64,000 bases of DNA, taken from positions 80,476,001 to 80,540,000 of the forward strand of contig CM060732.1 of the NCBI GenBank assembly GCA_030704615.1. Reading direction: 5' to 3'. The notes under the pieces are model-generated. The model did no database searches and was not told where the DNA came from. It saw nothing but the letters and a program-made list of their open reading frames with translations. Positions within the stretch are counted from its first letter, which is position 1. The number at the start of each line of letters is the position of its first letter. The DNA comes from Takakia lepidozioides. Its lineage: Eukaryota; Plantae; Bryophyta. Made by a program: the position numbers and the translations under genes. Positions 25,812-42,885 of the stretch are shown here, one piece after another.

Positions 25812-26093
25812 AGTATTCCTAAGACGTTGTTTGTCGTAGCCGTGTGGCCATTGACTCTGCGCCTAGTTTGAGCGGAACACAAAGGGACAGAATCTACCTT
25901 TGTTAGGGACCGACTCCCGTAGTTAGACTTACCTTGGAATAAACAATTGATCCGGGTTTTCCAGATATCCTCTAGAAATCCCTTTACACAAGCATCAACC
26001 TGTTATGTGTGGTTTGCCCAATAACTAGGCCCCAAAAGGGCCTGGGCGTTTGGCTCAGCCTCGAGACTTTCAAAGTTGGTAAACAGAGGTACA
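25812..26093 (-). mobile_element. 5'-truncated LINE 3' end with an adjoining (GA)n tract, lying between two oppositely oriented PPR fragments
   Basis: Aligns closely with 4430-4710. Preceded by GAGAGAGAGAGA. No TSD is visible, and the truncated end abuts a PPR motif. Confidence 0.88.
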
Positions 26094-27520
26094 GACGTAT
26101 GAGCAAATGATGCGCGAAGGGGTGAAGCCCAACCACATCATGTTCGGTTGCATTTGCAATGTGTATGCAAGCCTGGGAGCCCTGGAAAAGGGGAAAGAGG
26201 TCCATGATGACCTCGTCAAAGCTGGAATTGTACCAGATGTCATTCTAAATCAACCCTGGTGGACAATATGTATGCCAAATGTGGGTGCATTAAAGATGCA
26301 AAGGCAGTTTTCAACAATATGCAGGCTGAATGAGATGTGGTGACGTGGAGCGCGATACTTGCAGGGTATGCACAACAGGGACGTGGGGTGGAGGCTTTGG
26401 AGACCTAGGAGCAAATGATGGGGGAAGGGGTGAAGCCCAACCACATCACGTTTGTTTGCATCTGCAATGCGTGTGCAAGTTTGGCAGCCTTGGAAAAGGG
26501 CAAAGAGGCCCATGGCGACATCGTCAAAGCTGGAATTGTACCAGATGTCATTCTGAACAATGCCCTGGTGGACATGTATGCCAAATGTGGGTGCATTAAG
26601 GATACAAAGGCAGTTTTCAAGGAGGCATTTCAGCAGATTCAGATACGTATGTTTGTCTCTTGCATAGGTGCAAGATGAAAGGCCTTGAAGCTGGAAAGCA
26701 GGTGCACACTCACATTATCCAAAGTGGATTTAGCAAACTACTCAACACCCTTGTCAACATGTATGTTAAGTGCGGGAGGATCATGGATGCTCACCAAGTG
26801 TTCAACGGAATGCCTCAACCATCTTGAAGCCCGACCACATCACATCTGTGCGTTTGCAAGCCTGGCAGCCCTGGAAAAGGGCAAAGAGGTGCATGGTTGT
26901 ATCGCAAAAGCTGGAATTGTACCAGATGTGATTCTGAACGATATCCTCGTGGGCATGTATGCAAAATGTGGGTGCATTGAGGATGCGGAGGGAGTGTTTG
27001 ACAGTATGGCTGAACGAGATTTGGTGTCGTGGAGTGCGATGATTGCAGGGTATGCACAGCAAGGGCGCGGCATGGAGGCTTTGGAGACCTATGAGCAAAT
27101 GATGGGGTAAGGGGTGCAGCCCGACCACATCACATTTGTTTCCGTTTGCAATGCCTGTGCAAGCCTGGCAGCCCTGGAAAAGGGAAAAGAGGTCCATGGT
27201 GACGAAATGTGGTGTCGTGGAACGCGATGTTCGTAGGATATGCCCAGCATGGTGTCATAGGGAGGTCCTGCAACTATTTGAGGGAATGCAAAAGAATGGC
27301 TTGAAGCCAGACAGTATCACCTTTATATGTGTTCTCTCTGCATGCAGCCACTCTGGCCTACTGAATGAAGGAAATCAAGATCATGGTGTCACTCCGACAG
27401 TGAAGCACTTTGGCTGTATGGTGGACCTTCTTGGACGTGCGGGACAACTGGATGAGGCAGTGGATCTGATTAATTAGATGCCAATCAATCCAGACGTTGT
27501 GGTGTGGAAGGCCTTGCTTG
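26094..27520 (+). pseudogene. Fragmented PLS-class PPR pseudogene ending in the E1 domain
   Basis: Repeated P/L/S motifs with frameshifts and stops. The terminal motifs KPDSITFICVLSACSHSGL and HFGCMVDLLGRAGQLDEA are followed by the E1 start MPINPDVVVWKALLG, which is cut by Helitron sequence. Confidence 0.9.
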
Positions 27521-28962
27521 GCGAAAAAGAACAAGATGCCAAAGTTTGCACTCGCTAACGGTTTGTGGGTCGGAAAAGTTCACGACATTTTGCCAAAATT
27601 AACCATGGTTGAAGAAGCGTTAATAGCAAGATACCGTTGTCGTGTGATGTTGTTCAAATTACAATATGTAAATAAGGGCGGAAAGGGGCAACGCGCATTG
27701 AGAGGAAATTTGGTGAGTTTTGCTTAAAATCCAGGTCGTGCGGTCAAATTGTTGAACAAATTGCCACCACCCTTAGATTCATTATCCGATATTGTCGCCG
27801 TCCACTTCGTCACATCGACCCATTAATGTCGTGAAAACATGTAATTTCTATACGTACGTAGACTTGCAGTGACGACATGGTTAACATGGCTGAAAAATAA
27901 TCACACGGGTTACAAGGACATTAAAATTGATAACGACATATTGGATGGACTACCAGAAAACGATATTCCACCATCAATCTTCAGATCGGTGTTTGAATCC
28001 ACGGACATTGACTTCGCCAACGCTGAACATCGTACCAACATAACAAATTTGCACAACAAAAAAACACCAATAAACAAAGATGACGATACGATCCAGCCCG
28101 TCATAGACACGTCCAGACTCATCGATTTTGACGGAATTGACATAAAGCACGACGACCTAATTTCCAACGCTTTAAATGGATTGCAACTACAACAAAACAT
28201 GTACCTGTCATACACGCATGAAACCGAAATGGTGAACGAATACGCAAACCCAAAACTGATCGTGTGCATGTTTCCAACGTTATTTCCGTTTGGAATCGGC
28301 GTAACCGAAATGAAAAACCGTCCAATTAAAGTAACTTTGGAGGCCCACGTTGAGTATTTGATGAGTCTGACCGATATCCATCACGACTTTTCGAAACATC
28401 ACATGTTTCCATTCTTCATGTTCAATTTGATGCAACGTAGACAAATATGCCTAGGCGCAAAATTGACAGTGTCGAGATCGACATTTCAAACTGAAGCACA
28501 ACTCCTTAACAATATCCGTTCAGAAGACTTCAACGATATAATAGACGACGTGAAAACAATAAACAACAACCGGAAATACAAAAGTTATTGCGACACTTGA
28601 AAGTATCCAGTAAACACGTGATGGCATCTGGAAGCAGTCACGCAACACAGAGAAACGAAATATTCAGCATGCAGTTGGGAACACCAAGTTTATTATTCAC
28701 TTTGAATCCAGCATTCGTACATCATCCTCTAGTGTCCCTACTAAGTGAGAACGACATCAATCTCGACATTTTTTTTTACGACAACCTCCCGGACCACAAT
28801 GAAAGGCGTGCAATTGCCACTATGAATCCAAGATCTCAAGCTAAATTTGTACACATCATCGTGAATGCAATTTTTAAATACCTACTTGGTGTCAGAGAGA
28901 CTGCCGAAACTACCACAACAAATACGGGAGTACTTGGAAACATAAATGCATATTACGGTTGT
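27521..28962 (+). mobile_element. Helitron Rep/helicase fragment (DUF6570-like plus Helitron_like_N)
   Basis: PKFALANGLWVG...LTMVEEALIAR...LRGN, WLKNNHTGYKDI, NEYANP..FPTLFPFGIG, PSLLFTLNPA..HPLV, GVLGNINAYYG. Frameshifted and interrupted by an LTR at 28963. Confidence 0.82.
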
Positions 28963-31465
28963 TGTCAACTCGTTGTCAAAGACGAGAACATGACTGAACA
29001 CAAACAAGAGATCAGACTAGAGGTACAAGACTAGGCATGAAGTCAAGGTCGGCGTGGTCGTATGCACGATGAGTAAATATGAATCAAGGCGATCTTTATA
29101 ACAATGAACAAGGGTACAAGATATTGGAATACAACTTGAATACTGGAATAATGGAAACTGGACTGGATTACCAGATACTGGAAACTGGGCTAGGGTACTG
29201 GGAATTGGACTGGAGTATTGGGAACTGGAAACAAGAGTAGCTTGAACTGGTGTTGGCGAGACTGAAGAGTATCCAGTCTCGCCTCTTATATATACTGGCT
29301 ACTAAGAAGCTTCCCTAAGAAGCTTCTCCTATGGAGATTTCTTGCTGGAGAAGTTTTCAAGATTAAACAAAGGTTTATTGATGGAGAAGTTTCCTTAAAC
29401 AAATGAGATATCTTGATGGAAGTTTGCTCCAAAGGAAGCTTCCTAAGCAGTTTCCCAAGTTACTCTTGGTAATTTGGTAAACTTCCGGTAACTTGGTAAG
29501 TAATGGTAAATCATGGTAGATCAAGGTAAATCACGATAAATTATGGTAACTTCTGATAACTTGGTAACTTGGTAACTTGGTAATTTATGGTATTTACTCC
29601 TGGTAAGTTCCTCTGGGCTATGTCCTTGACATCACCCCCCCCTCTAGCGCCGAGTTCCTCGAGGAGCGGTAAAATCTTGGACTTGCTTAGAGTTGGAGAA
29701 AATCCAAAATCCGGCGAATGGTACTTGCCAAGTATTCGGCTCTTCGTTCTTGACTCAAATGATTTATAGGTCCCTGCAACCATCGATAGTGTCCAACACC
29801 TTGAACTTGGGACCACGGAGTGATTTGAGCATATGGATTTTCGAAGCTGCATTCAAACATGATTTCGTTGCCCTCTAGGTCCGAAGCCTCAACCTCCAAC
29901 AGAATTATCGGACTTCGAGTAGGCTTCACTTGCCGTCGTACGGAGTCCAGATGAGGAAGTACACGTCGCATTGGTGGCCCATCGTCTCGAGAGCGTCGGC
30001 GTGATGTTGAAGGTCGTGAGAGTCGGAACGGCTGATCTAATAGCTGGGTAAGTGACAACTCCAATGTATCTGGTTCCTGTGACTCCACACTGCCAATACA
30101 AGATGCAAGAGTGCTGGAAGTGTAGCTATATATACTGATGTGTGGTGCTCATCCTTTTTTAGCGTGTATCAGGTACATTGAATGTGGAGTCTTCACCTTG
30201 AAACTAACTTGACTGACATCATCATGGTGACGTCTTATTGACGTGTAGCTCGGGGCTTAGCTGGATATCGTTGATAAAACTCTTAGACTTTGTTAGATGC
30301 ATTGGCGAGGTTGGATGAAGGTTCCCATGTTCATTCGCTGATGTCGTAGCCTTTCCAATGTACAAAATACACAAGACGTTTATACTTGATGCGGGAGTGT
30401 AAGATTTCGTCGACTTCATACTCAATTTCCTGATTGACTTCGATTGGTGGAGGTGGTACGGAGACTCTCCCTGGAATATTCGATGGATGATAATGAAACA
30501 TGAAAGACTGGATGGATGCGCATACTTCGTGGGAGTTCAAGTCGAAAACTGACCGGATTTATTTGTCGAATAATTTTGAATGGTCCCAGGCGTTAATAAT
30601 CCAACTTCCTTGACGGTCACGAGGTTTGTATGTCCCGTCGAAGAAGCCACACACGATCTCTGACCTTGAACTGGGGTTGGAGTTGACGACGTTGATCTGC
30701 ATATTCCTTGTATTATTTTTGAGCTTCTGCGAGGTGGAATGTAAGCTCCTTGTGAATCATAGCAAGATGAGTAGCAAGGTTTTCTGCAGCATGGCTTCCA
30801 ACAGTCTTCACGTGGAAAGGGTTTGCTCGAGGATGATGACCATAATTGGAGAAAAATGGAGTTTGTTTGGTCGAAGTATGTATAGTGTTGTTGTATGCAA
30901 ACTCAGCCAATGACAGAAGGTCCGTCCAATTATCTTGGTGATAATTTATTGTACAGCGAAGATACTGCTCCGAAATCTGGTTTACACGTTCGGTTTGACT
31001 ATCAGCCTGTGTGATTAGCTGTAGAGAGGTTGATCTTAGTATCCAATATATGAAATAATCCCCTCCAGAAATTTGATATGAACTGTGGTCCTCGATCAGA
31101 TACGATGTCCTTCGGGAGTCCATGAATGCGGTAGATATTATTGAGGAACAGTCTTGCAATTTCCTCGCCGGTAACCGTCTTATTACATGGAATGAAATGT
31201 GTCATCTTCGTAAAACGATCTACAATAACAAGGATTGAATCGGTGGTCTTGGAAATTGGAAGGTCCGTAATAAAGTCCATAGACACTGACGACCATGGGT
31301 CCTTGGGAATGGGTAACGGTTGAAGATGGCTATAAGGTCGATGTCGTGGTCCTTTCGCTCTAGCACACATGTCGCAAAGATTTTATAAATTCTTTCACGA
31401 GTTTCCACATTTGCGGCCACCAATAGTCCCTGGATATCAATTCCATTGTTTTGTTGGAGTGATTT
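28963..31465 (-). mobile_element. Ty3/gypsy chromovirus (Tcn1-like) 3' portion: integrase, chromodomain, PPT and 3' LTR (28963-29631)
   Basis: Integrase [47 protein letters not shown] region. Chromodomain EYEVDEIL..Y.VHWKGY. PPT AGAGGGGGGGGTGA abuts an LTR bounded by TGTCAA...TTGACA. Confidence 0.9.
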
Positions 31466-31469
31466 TGAC

Positions 31470-31960
31470 ATGTTACTGCCAATGTGGTCGACAGGAAAGT
31501 ATCGAAAAATAGATAACAGAGACTCGAGGAGAAGCTCTGGAGTAAATACGTTTCTGACCTCAGTCAATGGTGGAACAATCGAGGCAAAATGTGAATGCTT
31601 GTTGGAAGCAGACACATAGGAACTAGTGTGATAATCAGGGTTGGGTTGTTTGCTCAAGCAATCCTAGGTTGTCATTGTCAGCTGCTAGCAGCAAGGCGAG
31701 GATGTATGCATGATTTGTGCAAGGGCATGGATAGCTGAAGGAGCAGGGATAGATTGTGGGTCCAGATTCAACCAGGAGGGCTGGATTTCAAGCTCCAGAT
31801 TACCTATGATTCTGTGTGGAAGGATAGGTACAAGAAACCTGCATTGGTATATGGTCAACTGGAAGCCGCCGCAGCAACGGCACAATTGATCAAATCAGGC
31901 ACTGTTAATCAAGGCACATTTTTCAACACATTTCACCCTGTTTTTCCCTCTTATCAGAAT
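31470..31960 (+). pseudogene. OSB-type PDF motif module (two exons plus linker), degenerate
   Basis: EEKLWSKYVSDLSQWWNNRGK | GT 31591...AG 31765 | IQPGGLDFKLQITYDSVWKDRYKKPALVYGQLEAAAA. Homologous, intron included, to the copies at 35.6-39.6 kb. Confidence 0.75.
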
Positions 31961-32439
31961 TGGCAGTATTGCTCTATTAACAAGGTCCTTGATTCAACTA
32001 GTAGCACCAGAACAAACTGATACTACAACAATTCAGCCCAGATGTGGGCTTGCTTATTTTTTGCTTACTGGGCATTTTCAGGCATGAATTTTTGGACCTT
32101 GTGGCCTTTGAGGTGTCCATTGGGACATTGATCTCATTTGGATTTTTGTAATATAATTTACAAGGCGTGTATTCCCCTAGACTGGTCTATTTTGATTGTC
32201 TTGTGGTTGCTAGTATGCAGGAGGGGCATTCTATTTTTATATCGGAATTTCACCATGTAATGAAGAATTTAAATCATTTAATCTATTTTTATTTTATATA
32301 ATATTATTAAATTAAACAATACTACCTATTAATAAAATTTTCCAAGCTGCTATTTCCCTGTTTTTAAAAATAAAATATAAATTTAAGAATTTAAAATTAC
32401 AAATATAAACTATTAAATTATTTTCAAAGAACATTCTTG

Positions 32440-33089: not shown

Positions 33090-33976
33090 AGTGCTACAAA
33101 ATGACCTTAATTATTGACAATTGTGGCCAGGTTGGATTTTTCTCATACATGCACATTTTATATTTATTCTGTCCATAACAACTTTTGAATTTAGAACCGG
33201 GAGGGAACCGGGTCATCTCTCGGTTCTCTACCCATATACCCGAGCACCGGATTTGGCAGATAATTGCATTAAAGAACCGGTATAAAACATACCCGTGAAA
33301 ATGTAATTCAGAGATATACCCTGCACCGTAGAAAAGCTCGGGGGGGGGGGGGGGGGGATGGCAAAAATGGAGTTGTTGATCGGAAATTGGACCGACTTGT
33401 CGTATGTCAAACGGAACCCCGACCACTATATTACCTACTCATCTTGTGAATCTAATACCTATATTACATATATATCTATCTTACTGGAAATATCTTTCAT
33501 CTATGTATACCCTGTATATGAGGGGTTTAATAAAACCTATGAGATCCACAATCAATCGGAAATTCACTTGAAAAATGACCAAGGTTTTCGAACCTACAGC
33601 TGTGCATTAGCCAGTAGCCAACGATAGCCATTTCAGTAGATCAGTGGAAACCATCTCAAACAAAAGACATTGTTTACTCGTCATTTTCATCAACTTCATC
33701 TTCAGGCAAATAACTTTCTACCAAGCCTTCCAAGTCCTCTTTAAACTCAAGTCCAATCACATCTAATGAATCAACCTCGTTATTTCCAAACTCTTCCAAG
33801 TTTGAAGCATCCACATCCGAGCGAGGATCATCGGGCCAATGCTTCACTAGAAGAACAACCTTATCAAGGTTCTTTTTTCCAAGCCGACATCGACGACGGA
33901 ATATGAGCACACCCGCAAGCGAAAAAACCCGTTCAGTTTCAATTTGACTTTTAAGAATCCCCAAAATCTGCTTAGC
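33090..33976 (-). mobile_element. hAT transposon remnant: C-terminal dimerisation domain and probable terminus
   Basis: AKQILGI..SQIETERVFSLAG...RRCRLG..NLDK....NWP-like hATC motif. Truncated by an LTR fragment at 33977. Confidence 0.75.
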
Positions 33977-34240
33977 TGTAACACCCAAGATCTACACAAA
34001 CTAGGATAGAAGTACTTCTCAACTTTTTCCCAAAACAACTCGATCCTTCCAGGCTTTCATTGCATGTTTATATACCCTTCACAATATGATTATTTTAAAA
34101 GTTTGACTTGAGAGCCTCAAGTCAAAAACTTCCTAAAGTCAACCTTCCTACGTTTGACATATTCTCCACAATGTGACTTTATCAAACATTTGATCTACTC
34201 TCCATAATATAAATATCTTATAGGTTTGACTTGAGAGCCT
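33977..34240 (-). mobile_element. Partial solo LTR of the gypsy family found at 40.3-45.7 kb
   Basis: 33977-34083 is the reverse complement of 43271-43378 (LTR end ...GGGTGTTACA before the PBS). CAAGTCAAA.CTTCCT repeats match 40525-40555. Confidence 0.8.
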
Positions 34241-34810: not shown

Positions 34811-35199
34811 CGTTAGGATTAGTAGAGATTAGGGTTAGTATTATTCAATACTAAACAAAGAGAAGAACAAAGGGAAGAACAAAAAGACAAAAAATGACTC
34901 TGCAAATGAATGCTTTATTTACAGGCAAGAATCACAGGAAAGAACAAAGTCAGCAAGTGCAAAGGACAAAACATAGACACTTAAAGACAACAGTAGATGT
35001 AAGAGCTTCTCTTAAACTGCTACCAGTCAAATTTACAATATAGCACCGGAGTCCCAAAATCTGACTCCTCTACAAACAATAGTCTGACAAAGTGCAAATG
35101 ACACTACATATGCACTGAAGATAGCAACAGATGTAAAATGCATATGTCTTTCTACGTTTGCTACTGTTCCAGCACAACAACAAATCAGCAGGATAGGGT

Positions 35200-36690
35200 G
35201 CACCCACATTTTGCATGTACATGTCCACAAGGATATTGTTCAGAATGACATTTGGTAAAATTCCAGCTCTGACAATGTTGCCATGGACTTCTGTGCCCTT
35301 TTCCAGAGCTGTCAGGCTTCCACATGCATTGCAAATGCACAAAAACGTGATGTGGTCGGGCTTCACCCCTTCCCCCATCATTTGATCATAGGTCTCCAAA
35401 GCCTCCATACCACGTCCCTGCTGTGCATATCCTGCAAGCATCGCGTTCCATGACACCACATCTCGTTCAGCCATAGTGTTGAAACTCCCTTCGCATCCTT
35501 AATGCACCCACATTTGGCATACATCCACCAGGGCAGTGTTCAGAATGACATCTGGTACAATTCCAGCTTTGACGATGTCACCATGGACCTCTTTCTGGCC
35601 CTCTTGGATGAATCTGGACCCACACTCTATCCCTGCTCCTTCAGCTATTCATGCCTATGCACAAATCATGCATACATCATTGTCTTACTACTAGCAGCTG
35701 ACGATGACAGCCACGATTTGTTCTAGGAAACACCCAACTCAACTTATCACACTTGTTCCTATGCTCAATTGCATCTGATACTCTCTATAATCAAACAGAC
35801 ATTCACCTTCTTGCCTCGATTGTCCCACCATTGACTGGGTAAGAAAAGTATGCATTCCACAGCTTCTCCTCATCTCTGTTCTCTGTTTTTTGATACTTTC
35901 GTGTTGTCACATTGGCAGTATCATGTCAACGTTACTCCAAACTATCAAAGGTTCACTCAACCAGCTAACTTGCAGAATTCAACATGGAAACTTAGGGTCG
36001 ATTCTGATAAGAAAAACAAGGTGAAATGTGTTGAAGAAGGTGACTTCATTAGCAGTGCCTGATTTTATCAATTCCGCCGCTGCTGCTGCAGCTTCCAGTT
36101 GACCATGTACCCATGCAGGTTGCTAGTAGCTATTGATCCACAAGGAATCGTAGGTAATCTGGAGCTTGAAGTCCGGCCCTCTTCGATGAATCTGGACCCA
36201 CACTCTATCCCTGCTCCTTCAGCTATCCATGCCTCTGCCCAAATCATGCATTCACCCTTGCCTTGCTGCTAGCAACTGACAATGAAAGCCTCAAATTGTT
36301 CTAGGAAACACCTAGGCAACTCAACCTATCACACTAGTTCCTATGCTCAATTGCATCTTCTACTCTCTGTAATCCAACAGGCATTCACCTTTTTGCCTTG
36401 ATTGTCCCACCGTTGACTAGGGTCAGAAAAGTATTCATTCCACAGCTTCTTGTGGTCTTCGTTACCTCTTTATGGATTCTTTCCTGTTGTCACATTGGCA
36501 GTACTTATCATATCAAAGTCACTCCAAACTACAAAGGTTTACTCAACCAGCTAACTTTCAGAATTCAACATGAAAATTTAGAGCCGCTACTGATAAGAGG
36601 GAAAAACAGGGTGAAATGTGTTGAAGAATGTGTCTAGCAGTGCCTTGTTATATCAATTGTGTTGTTGTTGCTGCGGCGGCTTCCAGTTGG
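35200..36690 (-). pseudogene. Tandem PDF-motif modules fused to a PLS PPR fragment
   Basis: Two ~580-bp units (KKLWNEYFSDPSQRWDNQGKK / intron / IHRRGPDFKLQITYDSLWINSY*QPAWV), then IHPRGP joined at ~35595 to a PPR L motif, followed by S-P-L motifs (ERDVVSWNAMLAGYAQQG). Confidence 0.8.
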
Positions 36691-36691
36691 C

Positions 36692-37408
36692 TCTGAACCC
36701 ACTGAGCGACTCAAACTAGTCTGAACATTAGACATTTGCCCACTCCCAAATGGGTACCTTACATCTGGCAATGATTCTGAGAGAGGCCAGAGGGTGCCCT
36801 CATCCCTAACCACTGTGAACAGAGTGTCTGAACTTGAGTGTGCCCCTGGAATACCAATCGGACTACTCTTACCCCAGTTCGGATTCAAATCATCGTTGTC
36901 ATCGCTTGAAGAATTAGCTTGCCCTTCCCCTTCATCCTCCTCACTTGTCATTGCATCAAAGTAAATATTTTTTTGACTTGCTGCCCGTGTATCATAGGAT
37001 AGGGAGCGCCCAACCTCATCCTCTACCTTGTTTCCTTCCTGTTCCATGTCCATCTCTCTGACATCATCAACCTCACTTCTGCATCTCCTAGTGTCCAAAT
37101 GCGCGCTGGTCTCTTGACATATCCCTACACCCTCACTCCCTTGCTCTAACTGAGTACTCCATCTATTACAACCTCATCGCTGTCAGGGAACGCCAAAAGC
37201 ATTGAATTCTTTGGAGAACCTCCTTGATTATCGCCTTCCTCTGCAACATCCTCTCTCTTCAATTCATGCTTCTCTTCACCATACAACCCTTCAGAAATAC
37301 CATCTTTGTTAGGACTGGTTGCTAAGGTGGTCGATCGTACGAGGGCACACTCTGTTTTTGAGCAAAACTCGTCTTCAGCATCCATGGGAGATGTCACAAC
37401 ACGACCTG
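36692..37408 (-). other. Captured acidic exon-like host gene fragment inserted into a PDF exon
   Basis: About 720 bp of near-open, acidic/Ser-rich coding sequence (ORFs 37146-37397 and 36634-37098). It sits between PDF residues ..KPAW (37410) and QLEAAAA (36690). Confidence 0.6.
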
Positions 37409-37599
37409 CCCATGCAGGTTTCTTGTAGCCATTGATCCACAGGGAGTCATACGTAATCTAGAGCTTGAAATCTGGCCCTCTTGAATGAATCTGGACCCAC
37501 ACTCTATCCCTGCTCCTTCAGCTATCCCATGCAGATCCACCCAACAAGCTAAATTACAGAATTCAACATGATGCAAATTCAAGGATGAGTAATGGGGGA

Positions 37600-39610
37600 C
37601 TCCCTTTGTAACCTCGATGCACCCACATTTTGCATACATGTCCACCAGGGTATTGTTCATAATGACATTTGGTACAATTCCAGCTCTGAAGATGTCGCCA
37701 TGGACCTCTTTGCCCTTTTCGAGAGCTTCCAGGGTAGTGTTCATAATGACATTTGGTACAATTCCAGCTTTGATTATATCCCCATGCACCTCTTTGCCCT
37801 TGTCCAGGGTTCGATGCACCCACATTTTGCAAGTCCACCAGGGTATTGTTCATAATGACATTTGGTACAATTCCAGCTTTGATGATATCCCCATGCACCT
37901 CTTTGCCCTTGTCCAGGGCTCGATGCACCCACATTTTGCATACAAGTCCACCAGGGTATTGTTCATAATGACATTTGGTACAATTCCAGCTCTGAAGATG
38001 TTGCCATGGACCTCTTTCCCCTTTTCCAGAGCTGCTAGGGCAATGTTCAGAATTACATTTGGTACCATTTCAGCTTTGATTATATCCCCATGCACCTCTT
38101 TGCCCTTGTCCAGGGCTCGATGCACTCACATTTTGCATACAAGTCCACCTTGGTATTGTTCAGAATGACAAGGTCCATCCCGCAACCCTGTTGTGCATGT
38201 CCTATGATCTGAATCGCGTTCCACAACACCACATCACATTCAGCCATAATGTCAAACACCCCCTTTGCATCTTCAACATTCCCACATTTGGCATACATAT
38301 CCAGCAAGGCAGTGTTCAGAACGACATTTGGTACAATTCCAGCTTTGACAATGTCACCATGGACCAAGACATTTTCCAAGGCTGCCAAGCTTGCACATGC
38401 ATTGCGAACGCCAACAAAGGTGATCTAGTTGGGCTTCACCCCTTCCAGCATCATTTGCTCATAGGTCTCCAAAGCCTCCATCCCACGACCCTGCTGTGCA
38501 TATCCTGCGATCATCGCGCTCCATGACACCGCATCACGTTCAGCCATTTTGTCGAACATTGCCTTTGCATCTTCAATGCACCCAAATTTGGCATACATGT
38601 CCACCAGGGCAATGTTCAGAATGACATCTGGTACAATTCCAGCTTGACGATGTCAGCATGGACCTCTTTGCCCTTTTCCAGGGCTGCCAGGCTCGCACAC
38701 GCATTGCAAACGCAAACAAATGTGATGTGGTCGGGCTTCACCCCTTCCAGCCTCATTTGTTCATAGATCTCCAAAGCATTTGTACCACACCCATGCTTGG
38801 TAAATCCTGCCAACATTATAATATTCCACGTGATCAAATATCGTTGAGGCATTCTGTTGAACACTTGGTGAGCATCCATGATGCTCCCGCACTTAACATA
38901 CATGTTGACAAGGGTGTTGCGTAAAAAAACGTTCGGCTTGAATCCACTTTGGATGTTGTGAGCGTGCACCTGCTTTCCAGCTTCCAGGCCTTTCATCTTG
39001 ATGCACTTATGCAAGAGATAGACATACGTATCTGAATCTGCTGAAATGCCTCTTCCTTGGCATAAAGTCTGTAGAGCCATGTCAGTCAGTCTACTTCACA
39101 AAGCATCTTCACATGCCCAGAAGTCCCAGAAGAGTCATTGTGGACTCCCTCTCTTGGTCCTCTTTTAGAAGCTGTGGTCTGCCTCACTTTATCAACTGTG
39201 TCGGTGCCGCTGCTGCTTCCAGTTGACCATCTACCCATGCAGGTTTTGTGTAGCTATTGATCCACAGGGAATCATAGGTAATCTTGTGCTTGAAATCCGG
39301 CCCTCTTGGATGAATCTGGACGCATACTCTATCCTTGCTCCTTCAGCTATCTGCCCCTCTGCACAAATCATGCATAGATCCTCGCCTTGCTGCCAGCAAC
39401 TGACAATGATTTGTTCTAACAAATAACCCAACCCTACTTATCACACTAGCTCCTATGCTAATTGCATCTGCTTTTCTTGGTAATCTAACAGCATTCACTT
39501 TCTTGCCCCGCTTGTCCCACCATTGACTGGGGTCGGAGAAGTATTCATTCCATAGCTTCTCCTCATCTCTGTTATCTGTTTTTGGATACTTTCCAGTTGC
39601 CACATTGGCA
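37600..39610 (-). pseudogene. PDF-motif + PLS-class PPR fusion pseudogene
   Basis: Exon A EEKLWNEYFSDPSQWWDKRGKK ends at 39499. GT-AG intron 39498-39316. Exon B IHPRGPDFKHKITYDSLWINSYTKPAWVDGQLEAAAA runs, via a linker with a stop and frameshift, into VKMLCE..MALQTL..DSDTYVYLLHKC and then L-S-P PPR triplets. Confidence 0.85.
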
Positions 39611-39764
39611 GTAACATATCAAAGCACTTGTGATCGCGGTTGTTCCACCATCGTGAAGGATCTGTAAAAAACTCATGTCAGCTCTGCTCCGCCGAGTAAT
39701 TCAAGGCCGAGACTGATGAGAGGGCAAAACAGGCTGAAACAAGTCGAAGAAGAATCAGGCAGCT

Positions 39765-40248
39765 CGCACACGCATTGCATCTACAAACGAACGTGACCAA
39801 GTCTGTCTACCTTTACCCCTTCCCGCATCATTTGCTCATAGGTCTCCAATGCCTCCATCCCGCGTTGGGGCGTATCCGACGATCATCACACTCTAGGACA
39901 CGACATTTCGTTCAGCCATATTCTCAAACACTCCCTTTGTATCCTCAATACTGCCACATCTGTCTCTGTTACATGTTTCTAGATACCCTAAATTTGACAA
40001 TGTCACCATGGACCTTTTACCCTTTTCCAGGGCTGCCAGGCTCGCACACGCATTGCAAACACAAACGACCGTGACCCCAGTTCGGCTTCACCCCTTCCCG
40101 CATTATTTGCTCATACGTCTCCGAAGCCTCTATACCATGCCCACGCTGTGCATATCCTCGCCCTTCCTGCATCATTTGCTCAAGAATAGCTCTGCAAAGC
40201 CTCCATCCCGCGCCCTTACATATCCTGCGATCATCACGTTCCATGCTC
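39765..40248 (-). pseudogene. Degenerate PLS PPR fragment upstream of the PDF module
   Basis: WNVMIAGY, GYAQRGHGIEASETYEQIMREGVKPN, FVCNACASLAALEKG motifs with deletions. Confidence 0.8.
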
Positions 40249-40329
40249 TCGGCTCTTTACTAAGAAAACGCGCAGGAGACCCAAAAAAACAAAGCCAAAA
40301 TGAGGCTAAGTCCCAGCCCTCTAATGGGC

Positions 40330-42885
40330 AACCCTACAAATAACTTTTTGAATTTTTTAACCTTTTGGCTACTAAGCTTGCACTAGAAGTCATTCCGGCG
40401 ACTGTTGGTGGCAAGCTGGCGCTGGTGAATCATCCTTGACCACCCTTCCGTCTCATGCGGAGCCATGCAGTCATGACGACGTCTACCAACGTAGTCCTCT
40501 GAGCGACGATCTGTTGTAGTGCTCAAGTCAAACTTCCTTAAGTCAAACTTCCTAGGAACATTTTTAGTTATTTTGGAAACTTCTAGGAAACTTTCCTCCT
40601 CCATCTAGAACCTTCTAGATTCTACCCTATTACAATCTTCCCCTCTTTCAAGAAGCAACGTCATCGTTGTTCGAATTTTCAAAAGTTTGAATTGTCAATT
40701 GAGCATTTGCGAGATTTTGCACCGGTTCCTTTCCATAAAACCAAATACTCCAACACCTCATGTTGCCCCCGTTTGTACGTGCGTTTTTTCAGAACACGGT
40801 CGATCTCCCACTCTTCATTTTTGTCTATCAATTCTGGTAAAGATTATGGTTCTTGATTATCTTTGAATATTGATGGTCGAGGTTCGTAACGACGTGTGAA
40901 ACACCGGGTGGATCTTCATATGTGGTGGTAACTTCAGCTTGTATGCTACTGCTCCAATACGTTTAGTGATCGAAAAAAGACCAATTAACCATAACCCTAA
41001 TTTTCGCGATCCAATGATGTGTAAGTTGGTTGTAGATAACCACATTTGATCCCCAACTGCAAACTCCTCATTCCGTCGATGTGTATTTGCATATTGTTTT
41101 TGGCGATTTTGGGCAACCATCAGCTTCTCTTTAGCTTGACGTACTCCCCGTCGAATTTGTTGCACAAATGCGTTAGTCGCGGCTACCTTGGATACCTCCT
41201 CTTTGGTAACTTGAACTTTGTAAGAGTTGTTGGCACATTTGGGTGTTCGCCATATATTAAAAAGAAAAAAGTTTCTTTCGTTGACGCGTTGACGCGTTGA
41301 CCTAGTTATTGTATGAAAATTCTACCAATGGTAATAACCAATCCCACTCTTCTTGTTCTTCTAACGTAAATGCCCGCAACATGTCTTCAATTGTACGATT
41401 CGATCGCTTTGTCTGTCCATCTGACTCCGAATGATAGGCTGTTGACATAGCTAATTTGGTTTTAAGAATACCAAATAAGCTTTTCCAAAACAAGCTAGTA
41501 AATTGGGTACCCCATGTCAGTAATGAGAACTTTAGATAGCCCATGATGGGAATAGACCGCTTCCAGATATAGCCGAGCTAGTTCAGGTGCAGTGACGGAT
41601 TTTCTAGTGGGACGGATGTGTTTCATCTTACTCAATTTGTCTACAAAGACCACTGTAGTGTCGTATCCCAATGAGGTTTGAGATAACTCACAAACTAAAT
41701 CCATGCTAAAATGTTCCCAACGTCTGTTTGGTACTGGTAGTGATTGTAAAAGACCTGCTGGCTTGCGGTTTATTGACTTGTTTTGTTGACATTTCATGCA
41801 ACTTCGAACGTACGCCTCCACCTCATCTCACATCCGGGGCCAATAAAATGTTCGTTTCAGTTGTTCGAATGTTTTTTCAACTCCAACATGTCCTACTATC
41901 GCCGTATCATGAGCTTCAAACAAAACTTCTATCTTCAATGCAGGTTCATCAGGGATCCAAAGTTTACCTTCCTTGAATAGCGACCCTCGAACTTCTGTCA
42001 TTTTGCCATTCTTCTTAACGTTCACGATCTCCCCATCATCTTTAGAAGCCGTCGATATTTTGTTCCACCAATCGAGTTAAATGTTGATCTCTGTCAATGT
42101 GTTCATGCGCGGCCTCCTTGTCATTGCATCCGTCAATTGTTGTTTTCCCTTCACATAGACGAGCTTCATGCTAAATTGTTGTTGCCACTCCGCCCAACGA
42201 ATCTGTCTCTTTAATAAATCTTTCTGTGTCTCCAAGTACACCAACGGTTTATGGTCTGTCTCTACTATGAACTCTTTGTCTCCAAGATAGTGCTTCCAAT
42301 GTTTTGTAGCCAAAACAATAGCCAATTCTTTTCGTTCGGTTGTATGGTGATTTTGTTCCGCAGGTAACAACTTGCGAGATGTCGGATCATACCATTTCAA
42401 GATCGGGGCATGAAGCAACGCATCCTTCTAGGCCTAAAATGCTAACTCCTCTTCTGTAGCCCACTTCCATTTAATTCCTTTGACCAAAAAATTTGTCAAT
42501 GGTTGGGCAATCTTCGAGAATGCCCGTACAAATCGTCTGTAGAATCCGGTAAGGCCAAGAAAACTTCTTAATTGGGTAATGCCTTCAGGGGCTATCCACT
42601 GCTGAATAGTTTCTATTTTCTCACTCATCACCTCAATTCACTTCCTACTCACGCGATGCCCAAGATAATCTACTTCTTGTTTTCCAAACTCACATTTAGA
42701 TGCTTTGGCATATAACTGATTCTCACGGAGAACTTGTAGTATTTGTTTAAGGTGGTTTCTATGCTCGACAAGGCTGTTACTATAGATCAAAATATCATCT
42801 AAAAAAACTATCACAAATCTATCTAAGAATGGGCGGAAGATATCATTCATGAGGCCCATGAACGTGGTTGAGGCCATTGAGACAT
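40330..42885 (-). mobile_element. Ty3/gypsy pol 3' half (RT, RNase H, integrase, chromodomain remnant), PPT and LTR start
   Basis: [93 protein letters not shown] precedes an LTR starting TGTAAT at 40634. Confidence 0.92.

Follow-up and report, generated by a model that had tools for sequence, protein, structure and literature searches.

On the minus strand of the window (the whole 64,000-nt stretch of Takakia lepidozioides DNA analysed here), a PDF motif split over two exons lies directly ahead of a broken PPR array. The motif proper of the first half (39565-39499) reads ..EEKLWNEYFSDPSQWWDKRGKK and ends in WWDKRGKK; the second half begins at 39315 with IHPRGPDFKHKITYDSLWINSYTKPAWV, shows the pattern IHPRGPDFKHK...LW...P.WV and continues in an open frame to 39187, where a TGA follows. 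Between the two halves lies a phase-0 intron of 183 nt, with its GT at 39498-39497 and its AG at 39317-39316. This split motif had been proposed by a sequence-only reading of the stretch, and re-reading the sequence and frame confirmed both the coordinates and the peptides. The exon with the first half, here called exon 'a', would be bounded upstream by a putative acceptor AG at 39590-39589, and a tblastn match of residues 103-135 of the Sphagnum protein P0153 starts at 39588; exon 'b' comprises the second half plus the beginning of the linker. A PLS-type PPR array begins about 100 nt after the PDF motif, with PPR-like sequence from ~39130 onward. The three-frame map and the family profile described below revealed only PPR fragments and spacer ahead of the PDF exons, with no OB fold seen. 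The features of the locus and of its neighbourhood are collected in Table 1.

Table 1. Features of the PDF-PPR locus and related fragments in the window, listed by position, with the matches to the family profile at the end.
Feature	Position	Strand	Basis and remarks
Orphan first half of upstream PDF module, ..FFTDPSRWWNNRDHK	39627..39677	-	OSB-PDF HMM 6-21, E 1.2e-3; family profile 88-103, E 8e-4
Exon 'a', PDF first half	39499..39588	-	OSB-PDF HMM positions 1-24; family profile 77-106, E 9e-12
GT-AG intron after WWD.R..K	39316..39498	-	183 nt, phase 0
Exon 'b', PDF second half (to 39232) and linker start	39187..39315	-	TGA 39186-39184; OSB-PDF HMM 22-50; family profile 106-140
Broken PDF-PPR linker	39096..39186	-	In-frame stop and two frame changes (2 -> 1 -> 0), three-frame map
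PPR array start, 159 open codons	38619..39095	-	PPR_2 E 5.6e-17; family profile 172-313, 181.7 bits
More PPR repeats, shifted frame	38183..38652	-	Frameshift ~38646-38637; TAG 38427-38425
Collapsed array end, tandem partial PPR copies	37620..38170	-	Periods 84/109 nt; TRF rows 37645-38117
Next relic start: upstream spacer, intron 3' part, PDF second half with internal stop	37406..37590	-	First-half exon deleted
Second relic, PDF and PPR fragments	35070..36700	-	Profile mapping and blastn
Second relic: PDF module tail	~36700	-	
Second relic: one full two-exon PDF module with stop	36470-36100	-	36457-36380 = family profile 81-106
Second relic: first half and intron part	35870-35594	-	35839-35798 = family profile 93-106
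Second relic: mid-array PPR repeats, joined straight to intron	35524-35070	-	35524-35483 = family profile 226-239; 35483-35214 = 240-329
Other PPR relic	26.1-27.5 kb	+	
Other PPR relic	25.2-25.7 kb	-	
Match to family profile 77-106	39579-39490	-	In order
Match to family profile 106-140	39309-39205	-	In order
Match to family profile 172-313	39065-38637	-	In order

To compare the split motif with its counterpart in OSB proteins, we used an HMM of the PDF motif trained on OSB-type proteins only (129 motifs from 81 non-PPR proteins), with all 3155 six-frame segments of the window as target. Its best match was exon 'b' (39.8 bits, E 5.7e-11, profile positions 22-50), a score that is partly circular, since the training proteins had themselves been collected with exon 'b'. 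Exon 'a' came second (28.2 bits, E 2.3e-7, positions 1-24), and this match is independent because the first half never served as a query. The two halves cover adjoining positions of the OSB profile. An alignment of 146 PDF motifs contains nine invariant and five near-invariant columns; checked by eye, the window copy keeps 9 of 9 and 5 of 5, at equal spacing. The two exons were searched one at a time, by reference. A phmmer search with the 43 residues of exon 'b' alone against 1.84 billion representative proteins returned 128 matches at E≤1e-3, 27 of them at E≤1e-10. Most of the matched proteins are 300-600 residues long and show several matched stretches, and many are multi-PDF proteins; one, from Chenopodium quinoa, is named 'protein OSB3, chloroplastic/mitochondrial-like', and several of the OSB-type matches carry Pfam SSB. 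Pfam itself recognised no family in exons 'a' and 'b', and likewise gave no match in the PDF region of a Sinapis OSB protein; its silence is therefore no argument against the motif, Pfam being blind to the PDF of a Sinapis OSB as well. By these criteria of profile and column conservation, the motif at the locus is the PDF motif of OSB proteins, and the identification made in the sequence-only reading stands, with both halves matched by the OSB-only HMM (E 2.3e-7 and 5.7e-11).

Three of the phmmer matches carry the PDF motif in front of a PPR array: P0121 from Diphasiastrum complanatum, P0087 from Adiantum capillus-veneris, and P0004, a protein of 1371 residues with three PDFs, whose ORF runs without interruption on a Logan contig of 4755 nt. 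Two word-indexed searches, seeded with the N-terminal parts of P0004 and the Sphagnum protein P0153, added further members of this family, and the resulting 129 family proteins were scanned with the OSB-only HMM. An N-terminal PDF was found in 99 of the 129. The full motif is present in 78 of these 99, often in two or three copies and at 50-70 bits; the remaining 21 contain the second half only, beginning at residue 2-13, and are probably gene calls that missed the intron. A DYW domain stands at the end of about 25-28 of the 99 PDF-PPR proteins. The family members come from several Sphagnum species, Calypogeia fissa, Diphasiastrum complanatum, Adiantum capillus-veneris, A. nelumboides and Ceratopteris richardii; P0146, again with three PDFs, is encoded by an ORF in an assembled Pteridium aquilinum transcriptome, which speaks for expression of the family outside the window, and the Adiantum gene for P0147 is intronless, with 2406 nt for 801 residues. 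P0147 and P0004 show PDF and PPR in a single frame without any splice model. Intact genes with both parts in one frame, which the sequence-only reading had presupposed, are thus represented by the Adiantum gene, the Pteridium transcriptome ORF and the proteins from Sphagnum, Calypogeia and Diphasiastrum, and, among the bryophytes, lycophytes and ferns whose survey had been proposed, PDF+PPR proteins turned up in Sphagnum, Calypogeia, Diphasiastrum, Adiantum, Ceratopteris and Pteridium. The suggested family combining a PDF with a PPR array has been found in mosses, liverworts, lycophytes and ferns; the nucleic-acid binding ascribed to its PDF part would follow by analogy with the OSBs.

We then mapped a profile of the family, built from 78 intact N-terminal regions (PDF plus ~170 residues), onto the locus. 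The order of the intact family, with the PDF followed by a short linker and the PPRs, is kept (Table 1). The intron is shared as well: the Sphagnum compactum gene (L001) reads ..WWDHRSEK, GT ... AG, VNARYPDFKHK, and the Calypogeia fissa gene (L004) reads ..WWDNRSEK, GT ... AG, VNPRYPDFKHK, which places the PDF intron at an equal codon boundary and in the same phase in the window and in both bryophyte genes. It is absent, having been lost, in Adiantum. The second PDF half and the whole PPR array form one exon in the Sphagnum and Calypogeia genes, so no further PDF-PPR intron is expected. The Sinapis OSB gene has three PDF motifs in one exon, with no intron within. It is exceedingly unlikely, given these data, that a piece of an OSB gene, carrying OB fold and PDF, merely came to rest beside an unrelated PPR pseudogene. 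The region is indeed a junkyard of fragments; however, the order and spacing of the two halves, the linker and the first PPRs match the intact family profile, and the PDF-PPR profile scores the two exons higher (42.2 and 42.3 bits) than the OSB profile does (28.2 and 39.8 bits). Furthermore, the intron is found again in PDF-PPR genes, whereas the one OSB gene examined, that of Sinapis, is without an intron in its PDF motifs; no OB-fold sequence is seen upstream in the three-frame map; and the same pairing of PDF and PPR occurs again at 35.1-36.7 kb. Judged by this colinearity and by the intron, the adjacency of PDF and PPR at the locus is not accidental.

The array itself is recognised by the Pfam models PPR, PPR_1, PPR_2 and PPR_3 on three open stretches, with PPR_2 reaching E 5.6e-17 for 39080-38619, and TRF detects a 302-nt period over 38213-38810 that fits one P-L-S triplet. 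These matches and this period agree with the typical PLS PPR start that had been claimed to follow the PDF motif. The best PPR matches of the locus are to Diphasiastrum.

The reading frame is broken at the end of exon 'b'. The first lesion is the TGA at 39186, followed by a frame change, with a second frame change at ~39095; positions 141-171 of the family profile find no match in 39204-39066, the stretch that includes the broken linker. A 26-nt 'mini-intron' after 39188 that would restore the frame was dismissed as too short. Farther along the array, an in-frame TAG (38427-38425) falls within a KPN.ITF motif, and the array register is lost from ~38190. The 84- and 109-nt periods of the collapsed end do not match PPR repeat lengths, and 109 is not a multiple of 3. 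Near 37625 the array ends, joined to spacer, part of an intron and the stop-bearing second half of another PDF unit. With the C-terminal 230 residues of eight DYW-type relatives as queries, tblastn detected no E2/DYW sequence in the whole window, and the only match to an S2/E1 start (27418-27546, plus strand) lies within another relic. Upstream, no start or transit-peptide exon was recognised, the stop-free stretches above 39680 being PPR fragments. The PDF module adjoining the array is intact at residue level, and the rest is broken. The locus is thus very probably a pseudogene, namely a rearranged, truncated copy of a gene for an organellar, editing-type PPR protein of the PLS class with one or more N-terminal PDF modules, and the window copy cannot make an editing factor. 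Its earlier description as a relic is borne out by the stops, the frame changes, the tandem-repeat collapse and the missing E/DYW end.

Could the gene nevertheless be alive, with unrecognised introns or repair at the RNA level bridging the breaks, so that a PDF-PPR protein or a short PDF-only protein is made? The PDF module itself carries no lesion, and contigs of presumed RNA runs stop no more than 2 nt from the exon 'b' acceptor, although these contigs may be those of paralogues. We regard a living gene as very unlikely, however: the TAG lies in frame within a PPR motif, the frame changes fall inside helices that the family profile covers gap-free, the 109-nt tandem period runs against it, an E/DYW end is absent and a start or transit-peptide exon is not recognised upstream, and the Sphagnum and Calypogeia genes encode the second half together with the complete array in one exon. 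A transcribed non-coding or truncated product might still arise from this pseudogene.

The orphan first half upstream of exon 'a' (39677-39627) has had its second half deleted and now abuts the terminal ~40 nt of the inter-module intron, from which we infer that the ancestor carried at least two PDF modules, the first of which was partly lost. With the PDF unit as query, blastn located four further copies, at 36056-36523 (-), 35594-35929 (-), 37406-37526 (-) and 31464-31901 (+), the third of which is 89% identical to 39231-39351. In the second relic (35.1-36.7 kb) the PDF modules recur with a period of 585 nt, and an illegitimate join leads from the intron into mid-array. Fragments of transposons are also present in the window, comprising a Helitron-like N-terminal domain, an rve integrase and a hAT dimerisation domain.

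These fragments raise the question of whether capture by a transposon of Helitron or Pack type, instead of tandem duplication, unequal crossing-over and decay, made or spread the patchwork, in which case the dead PDF-PPR fragment would be the cargo of a mobile element. Several joins are non-homologous (at ~35594 between intron and mid-array, at ~37625 and ~39770 between array and spacer), a run of Helitron_like_N / DUF6570 ORFs at 27.5-29 kb abuts a PPR relic that is cut at the S2/E1 border, rve and hAT fragments lie nearby, and the reads of the genome contain very many near-identical pieces. Still, the relics in 35-40 kb are found on one strand and in gene order, as they would be after tandem duplication; the introns are kept, so retroposition was not involved; and the Helitron-like ORFs are 8 kb distant. 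Capture is an unlikely origin of the patchwork.

The abundance of related sequence is apparent from contigs of four public runs of the same organism, which we compared with 35400-40400. The PDF and PPR parts are buried under paralogous contigs of 90-99% identity, which number in the tens of thousands, so that the locus yields no transcript, splice junction or copy number of its own. A single-copy stretch (36736-37403) is represented by one contig per run, and the depth ratios suggest hundreds to thousands of similar pieces; the abundance of contigs fits a very large family. The locus itself is a record of family turnover and of multi-module PDF arrays only.

According to two reviews that treat OSB proteins (PMC6963530, PMC4166229), AtOSB1 needs no more than its PDF motif to bind ssDNA, OSBs bind ssDNA in preference to dsDNA or RNA, and preferential ssDNA binding is established for AtOSB1 and AtOSB2. 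Like the OSB proteins, the locus has a PDF motif of ~50 residues with every invariant residue at equal spacing. However, the PDF of OSBs stands C-terminal to an SSB-like OB fold, whereas that of the locus is N-terminal to a PPR array, with no OB fold seen, and the PDF motifs of the Sinapis OSB gene have no intron, whereas those of the PDF-PPR genes in Sphagnum, Calypogeia and the window contain a phase-0 intron. The locus shares a module with the OSBs and shows no sign, in the three-frame map or by the family profile, of being an OSB gene. Its array instead resembles that of PLS-class editing factors of the PPR-E and PPR-DYW types, such as Physcomitrium PPR56 and PPR65 (PMC6397227) and a synthetic PPR-DYW protein with RNA (PDB 9kfx): it is composed of P-L-S triplets with the usual motifs, and the relatives of the locus end in E motifs or DYW. 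Two differences separate it from these proteins. In the editing factors described so far, a transit peptide alone precedes the array, where the PDF-PPR family has one or more PDF modules. These factors also possess a C-terminal part and an open frame, while the window copy is without both.

Fusions with RRM, MORF and OZ domains, but not with PDF, appear in recent surveys (PMC13386178, PMC9459714); OSB or PDF goes unmentioned in the 2026 kingdom-wide survey of editing-factor domain fusions (PMC13386178) and in a review of moss PPR proteins (PMC9459714). The sequence-only reading knew of no functional description of a PDF-PPR protein, and we found none in the searchable literature either; nor did we find there any link between PDF and PPR, which is not proof of its absence from the literature at large. 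The silence of the domain surveys may be due to the PDF module having no Pfam model and to about one-fifth of the entries starting at the second half. We place the locus, in its decayed state, within an apparently undescribed variant of editing-type PPR proteins. PPR proteins with accessory nucleic-acid-binding domains are known from the P class, with maize PPR4, which has an N-terminal RRM, and the PPR-SMR proteins as examples. They combine a PPR tract with a second, less specific nucleic-acid-binding module, as PDF-PPR proteins may also do; in contrast, their module is a different one and their tract is P-class, whereas the PDF-PPR tract is PLS-class and its PDF is without a solved structural relative.

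A picture of the intact proteins can be drawn from the Sphagnum and Calypogeia genes. A separate first exon, as seen in Sphagnum, may encode the transit peptide; it is followed by PDF modules, each split by a phase-0 intron after WWD.R..K, and by an array to which, in these genes, E motifs or a DYW deaminase are attached at the end. The ancestor of the locus presumably worked like its intact relatives and recognised organellar RNA through its PPR array. Binding of RNA by PPR tracts is parallel, with the N-terminal repeats on the 5' nucleotides, and a module ahead of the array would therefore be located at the 5' edge of the footprint. There, the PDF could provide an added contact to single-stranded nucleic acid. 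Our best guess is that this contact would be unspecific and would raise affinity or keep the target unfolded; the main alternative is that it might tether the protein to the ssDNA of the nucleoid. In seed plants, separate proteins of the MORF type play such a helper role on RNA. We consider it possible, if rather doubtful, that in a large set of PLS-PPR proteins of seed-free land plants, many of them of editing type, the PDF serves as an integral clamp that grips single strands regardless of sequence at the 5' edge of the footprint and either holds or unfolds RNA for the PPR tract or tethers the factor to ssDNA of the nucleoid or the transcription bubble for co-transcriptional editing, and that relics such as those in the window record the fast birth and death of such genes.

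PPR editing factors are intensively studied and are engineered as programmable RNA editors. A conserved extra PDF module on many PLS-PPR proteins of liverworts, mosses, lycophytes and ferns, some of them with DYW, would matter for the question of how very heavily editing lineages capture their target RNA, and designer editors could profit from having such a module added. The interest rests on the family and not on the dead copy in the window, whose contribution is one of anatomy.

The PDF is predicted to fold as a helix, three short strands and a helix, both within a longer AlphaFold2 model of Sphagnum P0153 and when modelled alone (pLDDT 86.5). Searches with the PDF-only model found no solved structural relative (best Foldseek E 2.8, with none below E 1; best VIA-align Z 2.8), and no mechanism can therefore be borrowed from a solved structure. 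The longer model, covering residues 109-332 of P0153 (the PDF and the first PPRs), has a pLDDT of 94.3 and a pTM of 0.84 and is consistent with PDF and array forming a single packed unit; it superposes on 9kfx_A over 155 columns with an rmsd of 0.9 and also matches the PLS-type structure 5iww.

Part of the PDF-PPR family appears in public databases in truncated form: 21 of the 99 PDF-bearing members begin at the second half of the PDF module only (database proteins P0155, P0156, P0161, P0162, P0167, P0173 and 15 others), probably because the conserved intron that splits the module was overlooked when the genes were called. Such half-motif gene calls, and the fact that Pfam has no model for it, may explain why the module escapes domain surveys. 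The structure predicted for the module of a Sphagnum PDF-PPR protein (P0153, residues 109-172) is of good confidence (pLDDT 86.5) and describes a small unit in which three short strands lie between two helices; no solved structural relative of this model was found (best Z 2.8). Outside OSB and PPR proteins, we also observed two PDF-like motifs (residues ~264-393) in P0049, a database protein of 1526 aa that carries a kinesin motor domain. This protein may reflect shuffling of the PDF module into further contexts or, alternatively, a fusion introduced by the gene model.

Further remnants of PDF and PPR sequence, as well as transposon debris, lie around the relic in the window (see table). In the orphan PDF module, the first half occupies positions 31523-31582, while the second half is degenerate and sits inside an 88-codon ORF; no PPR sequence follows this module.

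Features around the PDF-PPR relic, in window coordinates
Feature	Position	Strand	Remarks
PPR relic	within 26092-29034	+	reaches S2/E1 border (27418-27546)
ORFs matching DUF6570 and Helitron_like_N	27497-29034	+	directly after PPR relic
rve integrase fragment	30713-31370	-	adjoins orphan PDF module
Orphan PDF module	31464-32020	+	inverted
hAT transposase C-terminal dimerisation domain fragment	33674-33988	-	Pfam E 1.5e-4
Single-copy insert, ~700 nt	36688-37407	-	splits PDF second half from its tail
Minisatellite-like array	37645-38117		periods 84 and 109 nt; 80-91% matches
PPR fragments	39780-40260	-	heavily frameshifted; just upstream of PDF-PPR relic

In the neighbouring copy, the insert separates the P.W of a PDF second half, at 37410, from the QLEAAAA tail that usually follows, here at ~36690. 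Two open frames within the insert, 103 and 154 codons long, encode acidic, Ser-rich sequences, neither of which has a Pfam match. A single 4559-nt contig, from a run guessed to be RNA, is ~95.6% identical to the insert and departs from the window sequence on both of its flanks, and the insert may be a fragment of an expressed gene from elsewhere. The minisatellite-like array is a tandem repeat that arose out of coding sequence, its source being the 'LEKGKEVH...VDMYAKCGCIE' portion of a PPR repeat pair. The frameshifted PPR fragments are fused at ~39770 to the inter-module spacer and are the tail of one more relic. At the other end of the table, the PPR relic and the ORFs behind it could represent a PPR gene that was either invaded or captured by a Helitron.
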